A model generated the notes under the pieces. That model saw nothing but the letters and a program-made list of their open reading frames with translations, had not been told where the DNA came from and searched no databases. A stretch of DNA of 63,166 nt, counting the filler, from Perkinsus chesapeaki ATCC PRA-425 (lineage: Eukaryota; Protista; Perkinsozoa), in assembly GCA_013115145.1 (NCBI GenBank). It is 11 parts of 11 records of this genome, joined end to end, with 100 filler letters (N's around TTAATTAATTAA, not from the genome) between each part and the next. Parts side by side here need not be neighbours in the genome. Positions count along the whole stretch, not along the records: positions 35,006 to 54,208 come from JAAPAO010000643.1; 10 more parts are not named here. One strand, written 5' to 3'. The position numbers and the translations under genes were made by a program. Shown piece by piece: positions 34,906 to 44,810 of the stretch; the first letter of the stretch is position 1, and each line of letters opens with the position of its first letter.

Positions 34906-35327
34906 NNNNNNNNNNNNNNNNNNNNNNNNNNNNNNNNNNNNNNNNNNNNTTAATTAATTAANNNNNNNNNNNNNNNNNNNNNNNNNNNNNNNNNNNNNNN
35001 NNNNNCTTCCCCTCCAAGCGGGCGTGCGAACGTCTAACTGCGTCTTTCTTGCAACGCTCCACACCCGCGACCGCGCATCACTCATTAACATGGACATCTT
35101 GCGCACTTGAGCGTTTCTCAACGTACGCACGTGCGTGCGGCTACACCGCTGTGAAGTCACTCAACGCATAATCTTTCTGTGCTACTGCACATACCTCTCT
35201 CTAGTCGTCTTTCACTTGCGGTATATATTTTTCACCTCCGGTACTATCACAATGATCAATTCCTATTAACGTGCATGTCTTAGTTACGCACAGATTGGGA
35301 CCGCGCAGCTCCGGAAAGCGCGACATG

Positions 35328-35582
35328 TGTAGCATCACCCTGACTCTCAACACGGCTCATATTACCCAAGTAGAATGCAGGTAGTTATAGATATAATAGT
35401 AATACCTTGATGGCACCCGTAGAGGGCAATTAGAGCAAATGGGAAAGGCTACAAACAATACAATGCAGTGTGAGTCATCCCATCAATACGATATACAATC
35501 ATCATCATCTATCTTGAAACTGCGCTTCTTCGTGCAGTTGTAGGAAATCGGCGGAGCGTAGTAGAGGTGTGATTCTGCCACA
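35328..35582 (-). repeat. 3' LTR (255 bp)
   Basis: Direct repeat of 41226-41483. On the minus strand it is preceded by a short PPT, TTAGGGGGCTC. Confidence 0.97.
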
Positions 35583-35640
35583 GAGCCCCCTAACGACGAG
35601 AGATAGAATAGAGGGAGTTGTTACGTGACGAATACACCGA

Positions 35641-38600
35641 CTACTGCACGACTCCTAGAGAATGTAGACGCGCCTTCGAGTCGGCCGTAGGATAACCACT
35701 CGTCGAAATGCTGACCTTGCAGATAACCTCGTCCAGCTTGACTTCTCTGATCTCCTGATCTTCTCTGACATCAGTGACAGGTAGACGCCATAGGGGTAGA
35801 AAGACAGTACCTCGATCTCCTCCATCTAACACATGAACTCGTAACGGAGAACCGTTCGAAGAAGGGGAAAGAATACGGCCTATCATAACCAGTCCTTTAT
35901 TGTCCATCCTGTACAACACACAGTCATCGGCTTTATACTCGGCATCTATCGCAGAGAGAAGATGAAGTGGGCGACCATCATCCACCGGCTGTAATTCATT
36001 CACCGGGGCCTTCAATCCTGAGGATAGTTCAACAGAAGTCGGTCGGCCATTCACCTCACAGCGATACACTGCCTTGATGGAATCACGAACACCTTGGTGC
36101 AATACCTCAGTGCCGACGGCAATGTGTTCATCAGCTTGGGAGCCCGCCGAGTTAGCTGCCATACGAGATGCCATATTATAATGCGCCTTGAGGTCCTGCT
36201 GAGCTCCACGAACCTCGGCGGAATAAACAGCACTCTTACATATAGCTTCCACCACAATAGCGTCAGGAGAATCCAACCCATCTGCCGTAACATTAGAATC
36301 GGCCAATAGGGGCGTATTCGGACCCACACCATAGACGCTGTGGTGAACAGATAGACCATCTTCATCAATAGCCAAGTTAATCTTCGACTCCGCTGCTGCC
36401 AAATAAATACGCATATGCTCTTCAGAATCGCCATCACCGCTATCGATCAACCAATCGAACACTGCCGAGATAGACTGGTGCGCTCGTTCCACTCGGGAAT
36501 TCCCCGTGGGATTACGAGCCGTACTACACTTTGTTCTGAAGGCAAACATAGCGCTCAGATGTTGTACCACTTGACCGACGAAAGCCGCTCCTCTATCACT
36601 ACACAATAGATCAAAAGTGCCATGTCGGCTGATGATACGGCAAAAGAGAAAACGACCAACGAATCTCGCATCCTGCCCTGGCAAAAGATCGAAACAAACT
36701 TCTCCAGTTCCCAAGTCTATGACAGAGATAACGCACGCAGTAGAGGACAACTTCATACGCTCTACCAAGACTGGCGGGATGCACTTGTGGTCTATTGATA
36801 TAACACTGAACCTCCGGTGAGTAGATGGTAGCTTGCCTACTGCCTTCCGAAAGGTCTTCGGTCGACAAACAGGACACCGAGCACGATGGTCTCGAACATC
36901 CCTACTTACTGAGGGCCACCAAGCACACCGCAAGACAGAGTTAAGAAGGGGGGTAGTAGAATTGTGCACACCTACAAGAGTATCATGTAGTAGATACAAA
37001 ATACTACTTCTCAGATCATACTTGTCGTAACGATCCTCTAATAGGTTTACCGGACAACACTCAGGGACCACTATGACAGGACCCAATTTGAGTTTAGAAC
37101 CATCACGGATAATAGGGATCGTGTACAACAACTGAATGCCATCCTCGGAACGAAGGAAGAAGAAACGTTCCCTCTCCCACTTACGGATCCTCGTAAGAGC
37201 TATAGGAGGTAACTGAGAACTATCACCACCAGATAAGACCAAGATTATATCGGCCAACCTGACACCTTGGAATACGCTGGAATCCTTAACCTGAGCCTCT
37301 TTCACCAAAGCTTTCTGCTCCGGAGTGAGTGGGAGTTGTGGTACATCTTCCAGTAGGGATTCCGCGCTGGCCTCCGAGTATACCGATTGTAGGTCTTCTT
37401 CATCAGTGGATTGTCCTTCCTCAGAATGATGGATACTAGGCGGCTCGGGGTCGCTCTCGACAATCATCATTGCGGGAGCGGCTCCCCCATAATCGGCTTT
37501 ATCAGTAGTTAGACTCTCGCTGCTCTGCCGTGCTGACTTAGCCAATGCAGTGGCCCATCGACTGAGTAGGTCAGCAAGGTCATTACTGATGCCCTTGCAG
37601 TGTCGAAAGATCATCGGCAAGTGTCTCCACTCACCAACATCCTCACACCACGATAGAAACCTTTTCACCTTAGGACTGGCCAAAGGACAGCCCGGGATCT
37701 CATAAGTAGACCATCGGTGTAGGCATATCATAGAGTCAGTCATCACCAGGATCTTCGCCTTATCGTCGAAGTCAGACGCAAGGCCTGGACACGAGATTGG
37801 TCGAGTGGTTGATACCAGTAGACGGTACCAAGTCTGTACAGCATGTAGGACTGAGAAAACTTCCTTCTCATATATTTGCCAACGGAGTTCGTGCTGTGAC
37901 AGTACCTTACTAGTAACACTGACCAGTGATGATCTCGACGCATCTTGTAGGATATCAGGAGTGATGGCTTTGGCCTGACCTGTCACTCTGTAAAGGCCGG
38001 CTCCACATGCAACATCACTCGCATCTGCAACTATAACCCAGCACCGGGTTTCGCCATCTACCAAATCACGGTAGCTGTGTAGCGCCATTGGTGCCAGAGT
38101 GACCGCCTCAGACAGCTTGACCAAAGCTTGCTTAGCTTCCTCGCTGAAGTGGAAGGGTTTGGTACATTCCGTTTGATGTAGGGTCTTCATTATTGTGGCA
38201 TAATCACAAAAACGTTCTAGCTTTCTGAACGCAGTAGACGCATATTTGATGCTACCAATAACCCTTCTCAGGTGAGGTGCGCTCGAGGGATTTGCACTCA
38301 AGGCACGACGCAGTTTGGCCTCATTGTGCTCGGTCATGACTACACCACCCTGACTCCATCGGAATCCGATACAGTCCGCGTACTCACGTACCTCGGCCGG
38401 GACCTTAGAGCTTATTTGCTTATCTAGCGCCCACAGGGCGCAGCAAATTAAGCGTCTCCGATGTTCACAGAGTTCCCGAGTTGGTGCATATATCAATATA
38501 TCATCGACAAAAATTGCCGTGTACTCCAATACCTCAGGTCCCAGTATAGTGACCAAGCCATGACGTAGATGAAACCGCCAATATAGAGGGGATATACTAA

Positions 38601-39792
38601 GCCCTTGCAAAGCCACCAGCGACCGGTAGTAGGCATCACCAAGCCTTAGGCAGAGTAAGTTAGATGAGCGTTCGCTAACACGTATAGTGGAGAAAGCGTT
38701 AGAAACGTCAACGGTACAGAAGTACCGTGAAGTTTCTGGAACCTCTCTTAGAAACACTTCCTTGCTCTGGCCGTCGACCCGATAATAGTGTGGTATACAT
38801 ATGACCGAATTTAGTCGGCGTAGATCTATCAACAGTCTCACTTCTTCTCGATCAATGCCTCGGTCGTCGGTATACGTCCGGCCTTTGCTTTTGGGAAAGC
38901 AGGCGGACACCCACTGTTCTGGGCCCAACTTTGTTTGGACCCAGTTGCCCATCTCTAGCTCTTCATTCACCCGCTTCATAGTGCCAGGCCAGAGGCCTGA
39001 GGGTACGCCATAAGGCGCCGAGCATTGAAATGGACTTTTGGCCAATGCTTCTGGAATGCTAAAGTCGAGTACCGGGGCCTCATAGTTGATGTCTTTGAGG
39101 CCTGCTTTGAAGTCGGCTACTATCTCCGTGTCGCTCTTCAAGAGGATGTCCTCAACAGACTGTGGAATCAACGCACACGCCGGAGTAGAACCATCCCGTG
39201 ATCGACGTTGAAGGGGTGAAAGAGAAACTGAGATGCCATGTTGCGGGACCTCAAATCTCTTCTCTGCCAAATGTAGGTTGGCCCCCATTCGTTGCATTGA
39301 CCGGAATCCGATAATCATATCCATTTGTACGCATGTGGTCGCCATGTTGACCGAGAGTGCGTACAGATACATAGACTGCCCACCAATCTGGACATGTAGT
39401 CTCACCTTACAGTGAGGTCTGAATGTAGTGCCGCGAAAACCGGCAAGTTGAGGCAGATCTTCTTTGGCACAGTTCACCACATCGCATAGGCCACTCTGTG
39501 TAAGCCGATCATCAATCAAGTTGTACTCAGATAAGGTATCGACACCAACAATACAGGACCTCCTAGAAGTGTCCGGTGATATCAAGGTGGCGTCAATAGA
39601 TGATACTGTTAGGGCGTCCGAGGACTCAACTGATGGACTCACCATATAGGTGGGTATGACAGGCTCTTCTTTGTCGTCAGGTTTCTTCTGACTTGACTTA
39701 AGAGTGTACCAGCTTGGTCTCACCGTGCAGGAAGGGTTTTCCCAGCAATTGTCCGGGTTGTGCATAACCAATTTATTGCAGAACCGGCACAT
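35641..39792 (-). CDS. pol: Pol polyprotein (zinc knuckle, protease, RT, RNase H, integrase)
   Basis: CRFC..H….C knuckle, VDTLS protease motif, DVSNAF and FVDD RT motifs, DASD…YEKE…TDS…NDLADLLSR RNase H, H..H…CPVC, IDH / SDRGAAF / GNSRVERAH integrase. Confidence 0.95.
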   Translation of the reverse strand: MCRFCNKLVMHNPDNCWENPSCTVRPSWYTLKSSQKKPDDKEEPVIPTYMVSPSVESSDALTVSSIDATLISPDTSRRSCIVGVDTLSEYNLIDDRLTQSGLCDVVNCAKEDLPQLAGFRGTTFRPHCKVRLHVQIGGQSMYLYALSVNMATTCVQMDMIIGFRSMQRMGANLHLAEKRFEVPQHGISVSLSPLQRRSRDGSTPACALIPQSVEDILLKSDTEIVADFKAGLKDINYEAPVLDFSIPEALAKSPFQCSAPYGVPSGLWPGTMKRVNEELEMGNWVQTKLGPEQWVSACFPKSKGRTYTDDRGIDREEVRLLIDLRRLNSVICIPHYYRVDGQSKEVFLREVPETSRYFCTVDVSNAFSTIRVSERSSNLLCLRLGDAYYRSLVALQGLSISPLYWRFHLRHGLVTILGPEVLEYTAIFVDDILIYAPTRELCEHRRRLICCALWALDKQISSKVPAEVREYADCIGFRWSQGGVVMTEHNEAKLRRALSANPSSAPHLRRVIGSIKYASTAFRKLERFCDYATIMKTLHQTECTKPFHFSEEAKQALVKLSEAVTLAPMALHSYRDLVDGETRCWVIVADASDVACGAGLYRVTGQAKAITPDILQDASRSSLVSVTSKVLSQHELRWQIYEKEVFSVLHAVQTWYRLLVSTTRPISCPGLASDFDDKAKILVMTDSMICLHRWSTYEIPGCPLASPKVKRFLSWCEDVGEWRHLPMIFRHCKGISNDLADLLSRWATALAKSARQSSESLTTDKADYGGAAPAMMIVESDPEPPSIHHSEEGQSTDEEDLQSVYSEASAESLLEDVPQLPLTPEQKALVKEAQVKDSSVFQGVRLADIILVLSGGDSSQLPPIALTRIRKWERERFFFLRSEDGIQLLYTIPIIRDGSKLKLGPVIVVPECCPVNLLEDRYDKYDLRSSILYLLHDTLVGVHNSTTPLLNSVLRCAWWPSVSRDVRDHRARCPVCRPKTFRKAVGKLPSTHRRFSVISIDHKCIPPVLVERMKLSSTACVISVIDLGTGEVCFDLLPGQDARFVGRFLFCRIISRHGTFDLLCSDRGAAFVGQVVQHLSAMFAFRTKCSTARNPTGNSRVERAHQSISAVFDWLIDSGDGDSEEHMRIYLAAAESKINLAIDEDGLSVHHSVYGVGPNTPLLADSNVTADGLDSPDAIVVEAICKSAVYSAEVRGAQQDLKAHYNMASRMAANSAGSQADEHIAVGTEVLHQGVRDSIKAVYRCEVNGRPTSVELSSGLKAPVNELQPVDDGRPLHLLSAIDAEYKADDCVLYRMDNKGLVMIGRILSPSSNGSPLRVHVLDGGDRGTVFLPLWRLPVTDVREDQEIREVKLDEVICKVSISTSGYPTADSKARLHSLGVVQ

Positions 39793-41258
39793 ACTGGGCT
39801 CCTTCTTAGCAACCTTGGGGTTGTTGGCCTGCCCTGACGCTTTAGTAGGTAAGGTAGGCCCCCCATTGGACTGGGGCGTGACAGAGGCTTAGGTCCTTGT
39901 AGAGAACGATGACGAGAGTTGTAGGATTGAGAAGGCTTGTGGTTGTTGCTGTTGTTGTTAGCACTGCTGTCCGCCTTCTGGGGTCCTTTACCAGTAAAGA
40001 TAGAGGTGGCTCCAATGTATCCCTCCGAAGACGTTATCTCGCGAGGCTGCCGCTGCTTAGGGTCCTCCCAAGGGAGGGTAGTGTTCATCTCTTCCTCGAC
40101 AATAAGCAGGCGCTGTACAAGGTCACTGTGGGTAAGGGTTTCCACCTTGACCCGTTCCCGCTTGATACGCTTGGAGAGCTCATTCTTGACATCTTGATGA
40201 ATAGAGCGAGCAATCTGCAATATTCTATCATACTCCGAGGGAGGGGAAAGATTCTTGAACTCAAAGCACATCTCCATCCTCTGCCAGGCCTCATCTTCTC
40301 GACGGAAGTACTCCGATATGGGCTCGTGCTTCCTCTGTGATAGAGAAAGCCAGAGCTGCTTTGCTTGGAGATGACCATGAGAACCTATCTTGAATTTGGC
40401 CCAGGCCAAGGTTAACGTCTTAAGTAACCATGACCAATCACCACCAAGCACTAGGTCACAACCAGGTAGTTCAGCATAGTCGGTCTTGTAGGGGATCGAC
40501 GGTCTCGTTATCATAGGACTTTTTCTGGAAGTGATCTCTGTCGTTATAGCACCTAGAGCGCTCACATCCCTGCAGCATAATGCCTTAAGTAGGATAGCTT
40601 CAGTGATTCTTCTGAGGCTTTCATCGCCATTATTGGAGACTTCACATACTAATAAGGCTGTGATGCAGGGTATATTGAGCTTGAAGGTAACCTCAAGGGA
40701 CTCGACAGCACCTTGAAGGGCGAGGGCAAAATCTTCCTCGCTACCCTTAGCCCTCATAAGAGCAAAAGGGTTATCGTTGGCCTCCGACAACTCGGCGTGC
40801 AACTCGGGGATAGATGTGGCCCAAAATCTGTCATATAGATGAGTAGGTACATCCACCCGAGAGTAGAGGAAAAGCGTCGGATGGGATCTCGTAGGAACCC
40901 CCGTACGCTGTAGGCTTGTTCTTACCAAAGCTGTGGCACTAGTACCGGCATCAAAGTTGTTGTTGCTGGTCTGATGTCCAGACATGGAGTTATATCCATT
41001 ATCGTCTGGCTCACAGTTGTCATTGTTGCGAAGAGATAATGTTCCACGCTGACAACGTGAGTGGATATGCCTAGCCAGGGCAAGGACCCTAGGGTCGTCA
41101 GGGCTCTCAGCGGCAGATATTCCGCTGAAGAACGACTCGGTATCGCTCAGGAAAGATTTGAGAGCTTCCAACTCGTCATCCGGATCTTTTGGAGTAACGT
41201 GTTGACCTTGCTTTTGCTCTAATCCTGTAGCATCACCCTGACTCTCAACACGGCTCAT
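39720..41258 (-). CDS. gag: Gag-like ORF (first ATG at 41258, inside the 5' LTR)
   Basis: About 510-aa ORF upstream of and overlapping pol. Contains the capsid-like Q.K.EPISEYFRR motif. Confidence 0.85.
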   Translation of the reverse strand: MSRVESQGDATGLEQKQGQHVTPKDPDDELEALKSFLSDTESFFSGISAAESPDDPRVLALARHIHSRCQRGTLSLRNNDNCEPDDNGYNSMSGHQTSNNNFDAGTSATALVRTSLQRTGVPTRSHPTLFLYSRVDVPTHLYDRFWATSIPELHAELSEANDNPFALMRAKGSEEDFALALQGAVESLEVTFKLNIPCITALLVCEVSNNGDESLRRITEAILLKALCCRDVSALGAITTEITSRKSPMITRPSIPYKTDYAELPGCDLVLGGDWSWLLKTLTLAWAKFKIGSHGHLQAKQLWLSLSQRKHEPISEYFRREDEAWQRMEMCFEFKNLSPPSEYDRILQIARSIHQDVKNELSKRIKRERVKVETLTHSDLVQRLLIVEEEMNTTLPWEDPKQRQPREITSSEGYIGATSIFTGKGPQKADSSANNNSNNHKPSQSYNSRHRSLQGPKPLSRPSPMGGLPYLLKRQGRPTTPRLLRRSPVCAGSAINWLCTTRTIAGKTLPAR

Positions 41259-41483
41259 ATTACCCAAGTAGAATGCAGGTAGTTATAGATATAATAGTAA
41301 TACCTTGATGGCACCCGTAGAGGGCAATTAGAGCAAATGGGAAAGGCTACAAACAATACAATGCAGTGTGAATCATCCCATCAATACGATATACAATCAT
41401 CATCATCATCTATCTTGAAACTGCGCTTCTTCGTGCAGTTGTAGGAAATCGGCGGAGCGTAGTAGAGGTGTGATTCTGCCACA
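41226..41483 (-). repeat. 5' LTR (258 bp)
   Basis: Differs from the 3' LTR by one substitution (GAGTC/GAATC) and one extra CAT unit. Confidence 0.97.
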
Positions 41484-41520
41484 CATGTGTGGGATTCGAA
41501 CCCACGCCCTTAAACTAGCC
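41484..41520 (-). pseudogene. tRNA-like 3' fragment (T-arm/B-box; Ser/Leu-like), split by the retrotransposon
   Basis: The minus strand reads GGCGTGGGTTCGAATCCCAC-ACATG, a perfect 5-bp T-stem plus TTCGAAT loop. It continues as TCG on the other side of the element. No complete cloverleaf is present. Confidence 0.6.
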
Positions 41521-41965: not shown

Positions 41966-44810
41966 ATGGGATGTGCTTCCTCAAAAGTGCTAACTTTAGA
42001 CCAGGGGGACGGTCCAACTCTGATAAAGAGGAATCTGGCCAACAACAACACCGCGGCGGCAGCAGCAACGGCAACCCCTGTGTCTACGAAGGACGGAAGC
42101 GAAATCGCTGGTAGGCGGCGATATAGTGGTGGAAGCAGTAGTACGGGACAGCTAAATAATACTAAAGACTACGCTGACTCAAATAGGTAATAGATTGAGG
42201 GAGGTGATGATAGTGGTATTAATCTTTGTGCACCTGCAATGTCGAGTAGTATAACACTGTTGTATGATGGTAATATATCTGCTAACTAGTGATATAGGAC
42301 TATACGGTGTTATATCATTTATTCAATGCAGAGACTACCGGCTACATTAATTTATTGTACCCCGGTGCTGGACAATAGTATTTCTATCATGTCTCCAGTG
42401 GAGATTCTCATCACCGTATATTTCCTATTATATCTCCACTGTATATTTCCTATTATATCTCCACTGTACATTTCCTATTATATCTCCACTGTATATTTCC
42501 TATTATATCTCCACTGTACATTTCCTATTATATCTCCACTGTACATTTCCTATTATGTCTCCACTGTACNNNNNNNNNNNNNNNNNNNNNNNNNNNNNNN
42601 NNNNNNNNNNNNNNNNNNNNNNNNNNNNNNNNNNNNNNNNNNNNNNNNNNNNNNNNNNNNNNNNNNTACATTTCCTATTATGTCTCCACTGTACATTTCC
42701 TATTATGTCTCCACCTTAGTAACAGTTCCACGGGTTTGTTCAAGTATCTGATAGTTGTTGTGTATTATATCAGCCACGGTTCTCCTCAAGGACGTCGTCG
42801 TCGTCATCATTTTGAATCGATGACTGAGGACCAACTTATACATAAAGGAATTGCCTGTGTAAGCTGCTACCGCTGTTTAACTATCGTCGATCACGGTCCA
42901 CAGGTGCAAGAGGCTTCAGTTACAAAGGATAAGTTTAGACGGGAAAGGCAGCTTAAAAAGGCGAAAGGGTTGCTGATGGAAGCATTACAGCGGCAACAAG
43001 GCCGCGATAGGCCAGTGGTAATAATGATAATGTTGGATGGTTCCGGACTGGGTCAAATTAGTACTACAGCAGCACTACAGTGTATTTCGCTGGGTGCTAA
43101 AGTGTACTATGGTATAATAGTATTTCATTTTCAATCACCTAGTAACAATCTTACGAAGCGATTCACAGTGATAGTGTGTTTACGAGCACTAGCAAGCACT
43201 CCTTGAGAGACGCGTAACGATGAATATTCCATACACAGTTTTGAGACACCTTTTAATGCCGCTTCTTCTGTTTTCCGAGGAACTATGGGGATGGTTCTGA
43301 ATGACTATAACTATGGGTACGGTATAATGCAGAAGGGGACAGCAATGGCTTCTCAAATGTGCTGGGAATAAGCTCATAGCCAAGTTGATGAATTCCAGAG
43401 TCTACGAGATGGGGCTTTATCGCATTCCGGAGAGGGGCTGGCGGATATCCAAGTTGGCTTATGTCAGAGTGGTAATGAGAAACCTCGCGAAGGTGACGCG
43501 GTGACGGTTCATCTAGCGGCAGTGTTGTTGTCGTTGGGAGAGGATCCGGATGATGTAATATGGCATATCGCTAGTTAAAGAAGTGTTGTTAGGTTCGAAG
43601 AATGCTGGGAATGAGCACTCCTAGGAAGTCTCCGTCTACCCTGCAAACTATGAGTACGGTGGACAGCGCCGCCAGTTACACTGCAACGGCGGCGGCGGTA
43701 AGGGGACAGTTTTTGTGTTACTTTATCGATACGTGTTTAGAGTCCGGATCTACGTTCAAGCCCTGGGACGCCTGATGTGTTCCGACATAGGCAGCAGCAG
43801 CAGCAGCAACTTGCTGCTGCTGCACGCCAAGTGGTATACCTTTTCCGCCCTGCATTGTTGTGAACGCGGTGGGTTTAGGTATCAGTGCAGTTGCTGGATG
43901 AGGATGGACAGCTGGAGTCAGCAACAACACGGGACGTACACAATACTCAGAATGTAGGAGGGTTAAGTTGTCGTAGAGAACACATCCGATGTTCTGGAAC
44001 GTACTTTATATCCGTGCTAGTATTGTTGTCGATCGACGGGCTTGGGGAGCACGTCGGGGAGGCGGGAGGATATACAACTTTTGCGCCGTATCAACCCGAC
44101 ACCCAGTGGCGTTTGGAGCTGTCCGCGGTTTACTGATTGTGTAGTGGTCGGAATCATGATGATGAAGACGGGAGGAATCTTCCTCTTAAGAGTTGTTGAT
44201 GAGTATATGCTGTGAAGTTTTGGATCTAACAATAGTTAATATATGGATAGTATTATCATAGATGCTTAGGATAGTGTTCATTGATCGTTATAAATGTTAT
44301 ATCGATATAATAGGTATTCTTTCTATCAGGCGGGCCCTGGTCGAATAGCGGCAGTTCGCAGTGAAGTATCGTATGAGCCAGAGGAGCCCCCACAGTCCTC
44401 TCCACCATTGCCGAACTGCGCACCCTCGGATGTGCTCTTGAAGTATCACGCGTTTATGCAGGTAAGCCTTAGCGGAGCGAAGCGATTTTCGAAATGCATT
44501 TTCACAGAACTGTCCATCTCCGGCTGCATTTTCCCCGGCTCCGTCACGGTATGGCAGTGAAAGCGAGTCCTTGCAGATTTGGGTGAGTTGCCTGGGAATC
44601 GAACCTGTGCGGGCCGATGGTATGTGGGTTTTTAGGTTGATCAGCGACGTGGGGCGGGAAGTAGAAGGGACGATAGCGCTGTGGGAACGCCGTGTGGTTG
44701 GTATGCTGATGAAGATGAAAGTGAAGTGCTGCCGATGGACGAATCAGCATCAGTTATTGAGTTTGATCCGGACAATGATGAGCCGCTCTCGGATGAGGTG
44801 AGCTGAAGGA
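41966..44810 (+). CDS. Hypothetical multi-exon protein with an N-terminal MGC acylation motif
   Basis: MGCASSK start. Many short GT-AG introns link open exons (e.g. parts of 42736-43206 and 44294-44560). The 3' end is approximate. Confidence 0.5.
42416..42714. repeat. 25-bp minisatellite (GTAYATTTCCTATTATRTCTCCACT)n, intronic, spanning a gap
   Basis: Six full units before the N gap and two after it. Confidence 0.95.

Follow-up and report, generated by a model that had tools for sequence, protein, structure and literature searches.

A self-complementary primer-binding site in a Perkinsus LTR retrotransposon, kept by compensatory change in related families, points to Tf1-like self-priming

How does a retrotransposon begin minus-strand DNA synthesis when the sequence beside its 5′ long terminal repeat (LTR) does not look like a binding site for a transfer RNA (tRNA)? 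The question is raised by a contig from Perkinsus chesapeaki ATCC PRA-425 (JAAPAO010000643.1), whose minus strand carries a near-intact LTR retrotransposon of Ty3/gypsy type. It lies in a window of 63,166 nucleotides (nt), the whole stretch of DNA analyzed here, which joins 11 parts of 11 records of assembly GCA_013115145.1 and along which positions are counted. A sequence-only reading of this window had proposed that the element primes reverse transcription with the 5′ end of its own RNA, as does Tf1 of the fission yeast Schizosaccharomyces pombe. We find that the pairing behind this proposal is kept by compensatory change in related families and that Tf1-like self-priming is probably the best explanation for the P. 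chesapeaki element, with a probability that we put at roughly 0.8.

The sequence after the 5′ LTR reads GGATTAGAGCAAAAGC; it has no TGG and is therefore not a tRNA-type primer-binding site (PBS). On re-reading, the LTR end, the GG spacer, the PBS ATTAGAGCAAA and the LTR-internal motif TTTGCTCTAAT all lay where the sequence-only reading had placed them (Table 1), and its central claim, an exact complement that stops at 11 nt with TGG absent, was borne out. Beyond these 11 nt, an A stands opposite an A on the primer 5′ side and a G·U pair is possible on the other. When the LTR was shuffled, an exact complement of at least 11 nt starting no more than 4 nt from the LTR end arose in 0.02% of cases (p ~2e-4), and a complement of at least 11 nt within the first 15–30 nt arose in 0.07–0.3%. 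The 1–3 nt that follow the CA of an LTR are those trimmed by integrase, and retroelements place the 3′-OH of the primer there. That the 11-nt complementarity represents a real, selected feature at the minus-strand primer position, 2 nt after the CA, is supported.

Covariation of the pairing across related families

An exhaustive HMMER search of representatives with the pol region, which recovered true relatives that a word-indexed protein search had missed, returned ~35 representatives at E<1e-30. The nearest relative is a family of Perkinsus marinus ATCC 50983 annotated as 'gag/pol/env polyprotein', with 37% identity to the P. chesapeaki element over the polyprotein and 43% from reverse transcriptase (RT) to integrase. 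Each of its three genomic copies has 100% identical 325-nt LTRs and 4-bp duplications, and the identity of the LTRs indicates recent activity. In P. marinus the LTR end is followed by CA-GG-ATTAGAGATA (here and below, hyphens separate LTR end, spacer and PBS), and LTR position 162 carries TATCTCTAAT. Compared with P. chesapeaki, the core CTCTAAT/ATTAGAG is kept and the next two pairs differ in primer and PBS alike, G:C being replaced by U:A and U:A by A:U. At their N-termini, the Gag proteins of P. chesapeaki and P. marinus have only TGLE in common, a stretch whose codons span the end of the LTR, the spacer and the first part of the PBS, so conservation of primer and PBS acts at the nucleotide level and not through coding.

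Further relatives came from metagenome and SRA assemblies and are 23–29% identical to the Perkinsus proteins; the families compared share 23–42% polyprotein identity. In L004, L009 and L010 (36–42% identical to each other) the candidate primer is TATCGGAAT and the LTR end reads ACA-AG-ATTCCGATA; in L008 these are AAGAAATCCAAT and CA-G-ATTGGATTTCTT; and in L013, which has two identical 271-nt LTRs, they are ACGAGAAAT and ACA-AAG-ATTTCTCGT, forming nine pairs. The layout is common to all: CA, 1–3 nt, then a PBS of 9–12 nt complementary to the family's own LTR, with a distance of 83–164 nt from motif to LTR end that is a plausible combined length for R and U5. Seven families thus hold five distinct primer/PBS pairs. 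When these are aligned at the junction, positions 1–3 are invariant (primer AAU-3′, PBS 5′-AUU), and positions 4–9 are Watson–Crick in every family, with differing base pairs. For the individual families other than P. chesapeaki, the chance of such pairing was p ~1e-3 to <2e-4 where tested. The expectation that related families would keep or covary the 11-bp pairing therefore holds, through compensatory changes at these levels of divergence.

This recurrence bears directly on whether the complementarity in P. chesapeaki is a chance match. Many windows were scanned, so that an event of ~1e-3 could surface, and the element is present in a single copy in its genome; the architecture is nevertheless found again, each time with other sequences, in six more families, which for practical purposes refutes coincidence, and we regard a chance match as extremely improbable.

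Several other features of these LTRs and elements were seen. The sequence CATT..G.TTTG(T/C)AG-C.TT..CCA is kept immediately upstream of the primer motif in P. chesapeaki (window 41338-41358, minus strand) and in P. marinus (L002:2920-2945); its pyrimidine-rich stretch ends in YAG at a distance of 9–12 nt from the motif and may belong to a promoter or initiator, or be splice-acceptor-like. An AATAAA lies 15–25 nt downstream of the primer motif in several environmental LTRs (L004:7555-7576, L006 and L008), in L004 within a 9-bp hairpin (CAATAAAGA/TCTTTATTG), and is absent downstream of the motif in the two Perkinsus LTRs; its placement in the environmental LTRs fits a very short R region. At one P. 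marinus locus (GG677981.1), an extra tandem unit of LTR plus ~535 nt of gag, 99.7% identical, precedes the full element (L001:2926-4598), and the whole insertion is flanked by a duplicated cyclin gene, whose two copies are 96% identical and lie ~10.3 kb apart. Two polyproteins related to the clade, from a subclade related to L006/P0039, carry a C-5 cytosine DNA methylase domain (PF00145) between protease and RT, at residues 650-805 of P0186 (27.6 bits, above the cut-off) and residues 1490-1614 of P0032 (marginal), which looks like another capture of a DNA methyltransferase by a retrotransposon (compare PMC5890265).

Self-priming weighed against other uses of the pairing

In Tf1, the PBS is bound by the first 11 nt of the RNA, which RNase H severs from nt 12 (PMC7175516; PMC5341516). 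By analogy, transcription of the P. chesapeaki element would start at or just upstream of the motif (~41337), making the motif the 5′ end of R. The RNA 5′ end would then fold back onto the PBS, or pair with the PBS of a second RNA copy, and the element's RNase H would cut after ...AAU (between 41327 and 41326) to free a 3′-OH. From there RT would copy GG, U5 and then R as far as the cut, and the resulting minus-strand strong-stop DNA of ~100 nt would transfer to the 3′ R. For P. marinus this product would be ~155 nt long. Because plus-strand strong-stop synthesis would copy the RNA primer, a change in the primer would be written into the progeny PBS, and we propose that this explains why both sides covary so readily. 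The sequence-only reading had put the transcription start at about 41337. An exact start there is not supported, nor does self-priming depend on it, since RNA beginning at this position or farther upstream would equally yield a usable primer after the RNase H cut.

RNA was folded from the primer motif to 30 nt past the PBS. The duplex between 5′ end and PBS was part of the unconstrained minimum-free-energy (MFE) structure in four of the six families folded (P. marinus, L004, L009 and L010); in P. chesapeaki and L008, forcing it cost 1–2 kcal/mol over the MFE. The sequence-only reading had also described a second inverted pair, of 8 bp between U5 and the leader, and set it beside the U5-inverted repeat (U5-IR) that Tf1 needs. 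Both arms are present, its coordinates were right, and both are paired in the MFE fold of P. chesapeaki (Table 1). The suggested role is not supported: the pair crosses the primer/PBS duplex as a pseudoknot, so that the two cannot form in one nested fold, and no counterpart was found in the relatives, whose best U5/leader pairs span 5–7 nt. With a marginal p of ~0.04 in addition, we rejected it as a conserved U5-IR analogue.

Several points weigh against self-priming and keep our estimate short of certainty. What the sequences show is the pairing and its conservation, from which the start of the RNA, the RNase H cut and the strong-stop DNA are deduced. The MFE structure of P. chesapeaki lacks the primer duplex, and its leader, compared with shuffled sequence, shows no unusual stability (z = -0.74). 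In most families the proposed +1 nucleotide is a U, an uncommon starting nucleotide for RNA polymerase II, so that transcription may in fact begin farther upstream. LTR boundaries are fixed independently by two LTRs only in P. chesapeaki, P. marinus and L013; L004, L008, L009 and L010 are one-LTR circles or tandems in which the LTR start was set by the polypurine tract and the LTR 3′ end was picked after the pairing had been seen. Screening for tRNAs was confined to the window, the reconstructed empty site and the fetched Perkinsus loci. Finally, the pattern does not extend to every member of the clade: the site in L011 is of the TGG type, and the evidence from L006 and L012 is ambiguous.

The misfits concern a derived subclade and suggest that primer type can switch. 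In L011 (7354 region; Logan SRR20381879) the LTR end is followed by CA-TGGAGGCAACTGG (CA-TGGAGG...) and no complement to this site occurs in the LTR, so that it is apparently a conventional tRNA-type PBS inside an otherwise putatively self-priming lineage. L006 and L012, together with L007, were left ambiguous, as either the LTR ends could not be defined or the pair did not lie at CA plus 1–3 nt.

The L011 site also speaks for a different reading, in which the primer is a host RNA (for example, an internal or half-tRNA fragment of the sort used by copia-type elements) and the match between PBS and LTR is incidental. Half-tRNA priming exists (PMC6317226), and ARAGORN, which found no tRNA gene in any of the sequences screened, was run on the limited set given above. 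A host tRNA primer cannot explain the layout, however, because the LTR of each family carries the complement of its own PBS, across five different PBS sequences; this reading gives no reason for a copy inside the LTR or for its covariation with the PBS. Nor does any primer segment resemble a tRNA 3′ end, the complement of CCA being absent. We consider a host primer very unlikely.

A further possibility is that the pairing is functional without being the primer, serving cyclization, dimerization, packaging or the control of gag translation while another primer is used. Covariation demonstrates pairing, not priming, and long-range 5′ pairings occur in Ty1 RNA. In Perkinsus, moreover, the PBS lies within the gag open reading frame (ORF), and pairing would enclose the start codon, an ATG in U5. 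Against this, no alternative primer site is found beside U5, neither TGG nor another conserved block, and the paired block always lies 1–3 nt after the CA, the exact place for the 3′-OH of a minus-strand primer. The invariant AAU/AUU junction also suits a site of cleavage and extension, a fit that we regard as suggestive. A purely non-priming role seems improbable to us, and Tf1-like self-priming accounts best for the position of the pairing as well as for its covariation.

The element and its genomic setting

The P. chesapeaki locus is a young, single-copy LTR retrotransposon of Ty3/gypsy type (Table 1). Its pol ORF is 100% identical to the P. chesapeaki hypothetical protein FOL47_009330, which agrees with the earlier assignment of the contig to an alveolate. 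The two LTRs end in TG..CA and differ by one substitution and a 3-nt indel. In one DNA run, read depth over the element was 54–68, equal to that of the flanks, and approximately twofold over the LTR, and no diverged copies at ≥80% identity were seen; we therefore count the element as single copy. The polyprotein (P0001) matches RVT_1 (788-881), RT_RNaseH (1022-1097), Integrase_H2C2 (1362-1413) and, weakly, rve (1448-1531), an order of RT, RNase H and integrase that is typical of Ty3/gypsy (Metaviridae-type) elements.

Table 1. Features of the P. chesapeaki element, in window positions
Feature	Position	Strand	Remarks
5′ LTR	41226..41483	-	258 nt, TGTGG...GCTACA; direct repeat with 35328-35582
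3′ LTR	35328..35582	-	255 nt; direct repeat with 5′ LTR
Target-site duplication CATG, 5′ side	41484..41487	-	4 bp
Target-site duplication CATG, 3′ side	35324..35327	-	4 bp
Proposed self-primer TTTGCTCTAAT	41327..41337	-	LTR positions 147-157 of 258; exact complement of 41213-41223
Primer motif copy in 3′ LTR	35429..35439	-	same motif, TTTGCTCTAAT
Spacer GG, between LTR terminal CA and PBS	41224..41225	-	2 nt; 1-3 nt in relatives
PBS ATTAGAGCAAA	41213..41223	-	self-complementary type, no TGG; within gag frame, encodes ..LEQK..
U5 arm of 8-bp pair, CGTGTTGA	41245..41252	-	present; in MFE fold; p ~0.04
Leader arm of 8-bp pair, TCAACACG	41198..41205	-	present; in MFE fold
gag-like ORF	39720..41258	-	ATG inside U5 of 5′ LTR; NCBI model uses same ATG
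pol frame	35641..39888	-	-1 relative to gag; CCHC-like knuckle, RT, RNase H, integrase H2C2, weak integrase core match
Polypurine tract AGGGGG, directly before 3′ LTR	35583..35591	-	AGGGGG..-TGT junction recurs in relatives

The gag and pol frames overlap by 165 nt (window 39723-39888, minus strand), with pol in the -1 frame, which also encodes the CCHC-like knuckle. In contrast to these split frames, gag and pol form one ORF in all relatives, P. marinus among them, and the NCBI model bridges the two frames by a 155-nt 'intron' (39835-39989). Either the element uses a programmed -1 frameshift, or its single copy contains a frameshift mutation or a sequencing error.

Upstream of the 5′ LTR, the flank GCGTGGGTTCGAATCCCAC (window 41489-41505, minus strand) ends 5 nt before the insertion site and is what we take to be a perfect tRNA T-arm, presumably of tRNA-Leu type. 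ARAGORN found no tRNA on the reconstructed empty site, and Rfam gave only a sub-threshold match of the tmRNA/tRNA clan on the flank and nothing relevant otherwise. The flank may derive from a broken tRNA gene or belong to a tRNA-derived repeat. Hundreds of tRNA gene copies, which are targets of Dada transposons, have been reported in P. marinus (PMC3706591). Farther away, at window 42387-42736, lies a tandem array with a 25-nt unit, CACTGTA(T/C)ATTTCCTATTATATCTC, within which the assembly has a gap filled with N.

Phylogeny and known self-priming systems

To our knowledge, self-priming has been demonstrated experimentally only for fission-yeast elements, and elsewhere it has been inferred from complementarity in single elements. 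Such predictions cover 12% of surveyed plant elements, in the Tcn1 clade and the Ty1/copia TAR lineage (PMC6317226), as well as Cryptococcus Tcn1 (PMC7175516) and Tj1 of S. japonicus (PMC4600332). The part of the sequence-only reading that treated the mechanism as one of the fungal and vertebrate Tf1/sushi group is consequently out of date: it had overlooked the plant and Cryptococcus cases, and the restriction to Tf1/sushi falls. We found no published description of self-priming in Perkinsus or any other alveolate in the literature searched.

The relationship of the Perkinsus lineage to these groups was examined with IQ-TREE on RT–RNase H cores (48 rows, with no authentic Tf1 or sushi-ichi sequence included). 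In this tree the Perkinsus lineage forms its own clade (support 100/98), with the L013 group as a weakly supported neighbor, and all chromodomain-bearing polyproteins fall in a separate cluster (100/100) on a branch of 1.06 changes per column. No Chromo or SH3_Tf2-1 domain was detected at E≤1 in P0001, P0021, P0023, P0024 or P0215; both were detected in the control chromovirus L037. Although it probably works like Tf1, the lineage does not look like a member of Tf1/sushi on a tree without authentic Tf1, and that same tree decides neither for convergence nor for an ancient common origin of self-priming.

A metagenome scan with the clade alignment retrieved generic chromoviruses and no clade members. 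Because most of these chromoviruses are one family with a self-priming signature of its own, they could not be used as an independent background. In this family (L037/L021; Ga0307516/Ga0307508), which lies inside the chromodomain-bearing cluster, the LTR end reads CA-CT-ATAATCTT(A), also read as CA-CT-ATAATCTTA, with an 8–9-nt complement inside the LTR. Across L015-L094 (for example, L037:1893-10116 and L021:2025-10597), GTCACA-CT-ATAATCTT(A/G) follows the 5′ LTR, and these chromoviruses carry what appears to be a Tf1/Tcn1-like self-priming signature in dozens of copies.

Together, these results place a self-priming signature in an alveolate and in a broad set of environmental relatives without chromovirus hallmarks. 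They reveal a new lineage of a known mechanism and no new mechanism, and support the idea that independence from host tRNA primers either has several origins or dates back very far. Compensatory covariation across families so diverged is much stronger evidence than one match, and it yields a testable rule for the lineage: CA, 1–3 nt, AUU..., with a primer ending in AAU-3′. The recently active P. marinus copies with identical LTRs, for example the one in GG686192.1 (range 88560-100154), offer a test system. We give about even odds to a broader account, in which Perkinsea and uncultured protists share a deep Ty3/gypsy lineage without a chromodomain that would have been self-priming from the outset and would owe this to no link with Tf1/sushi. 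The junction in this lineage (...AAU-3′ on 5′-AUU...) would have been fixed while the rest drifted as RT copied the primer into the PBS; self-priming would then be recurrent and convergent, and one subclade would later have switched to a tRNA-type (TGG) site.

The closest functional parallel is with Tf1/Tf2 of S. pombe and other Tf1/sushi elements (Tj1, sushi-ichi and Cryptococcus Tcn1), which are likewise of Ty3/gypsy type and lack a tRNA-type PBS; most relatives of the Perkinsus element also have, like Tf1, a single gag-pol ORF. Unlike Tf1/sushi, the Perkinsus lineage has neither a chromodomain nor SH3_Tf2-1, forms a separate, well-supported clade and, in Perkinsus, places its PBS inside the gag ORF. 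Its putative primer is 9–12 nt with an invariant AAU-3′ end, compared with 11 nt in Tf1, no conserved U5-IR-like stem was found in the lineage, and its transcription start and RNase H cut are deduced from sequence. The chromoviruses of the L037/L021 family share the architecture of the Perkinsus element but have both Chromo and SH3_Tf2-1 and lie far from its clade. With tRNA-primed Ty3/gypsy elements and retroviruses, the P. chesapeaki element has in common LTRs, a polypurine tract, a 2-nt spacer between CA and PBS and the order of RT, RNase H and integrase, whereas its PBS lacks the initial TGG and does not pair with a tRNA 3′ end. As in the predicted self-primers of other lineages, the case is built on complementarity between LTR and PBS, a trait found in several unrelated LTR-retrotransposon lineages; unlike those, the Perkinsus clade is neither chromovirus nor Ty1/copia, and the argument for it also draws on covariation across families.

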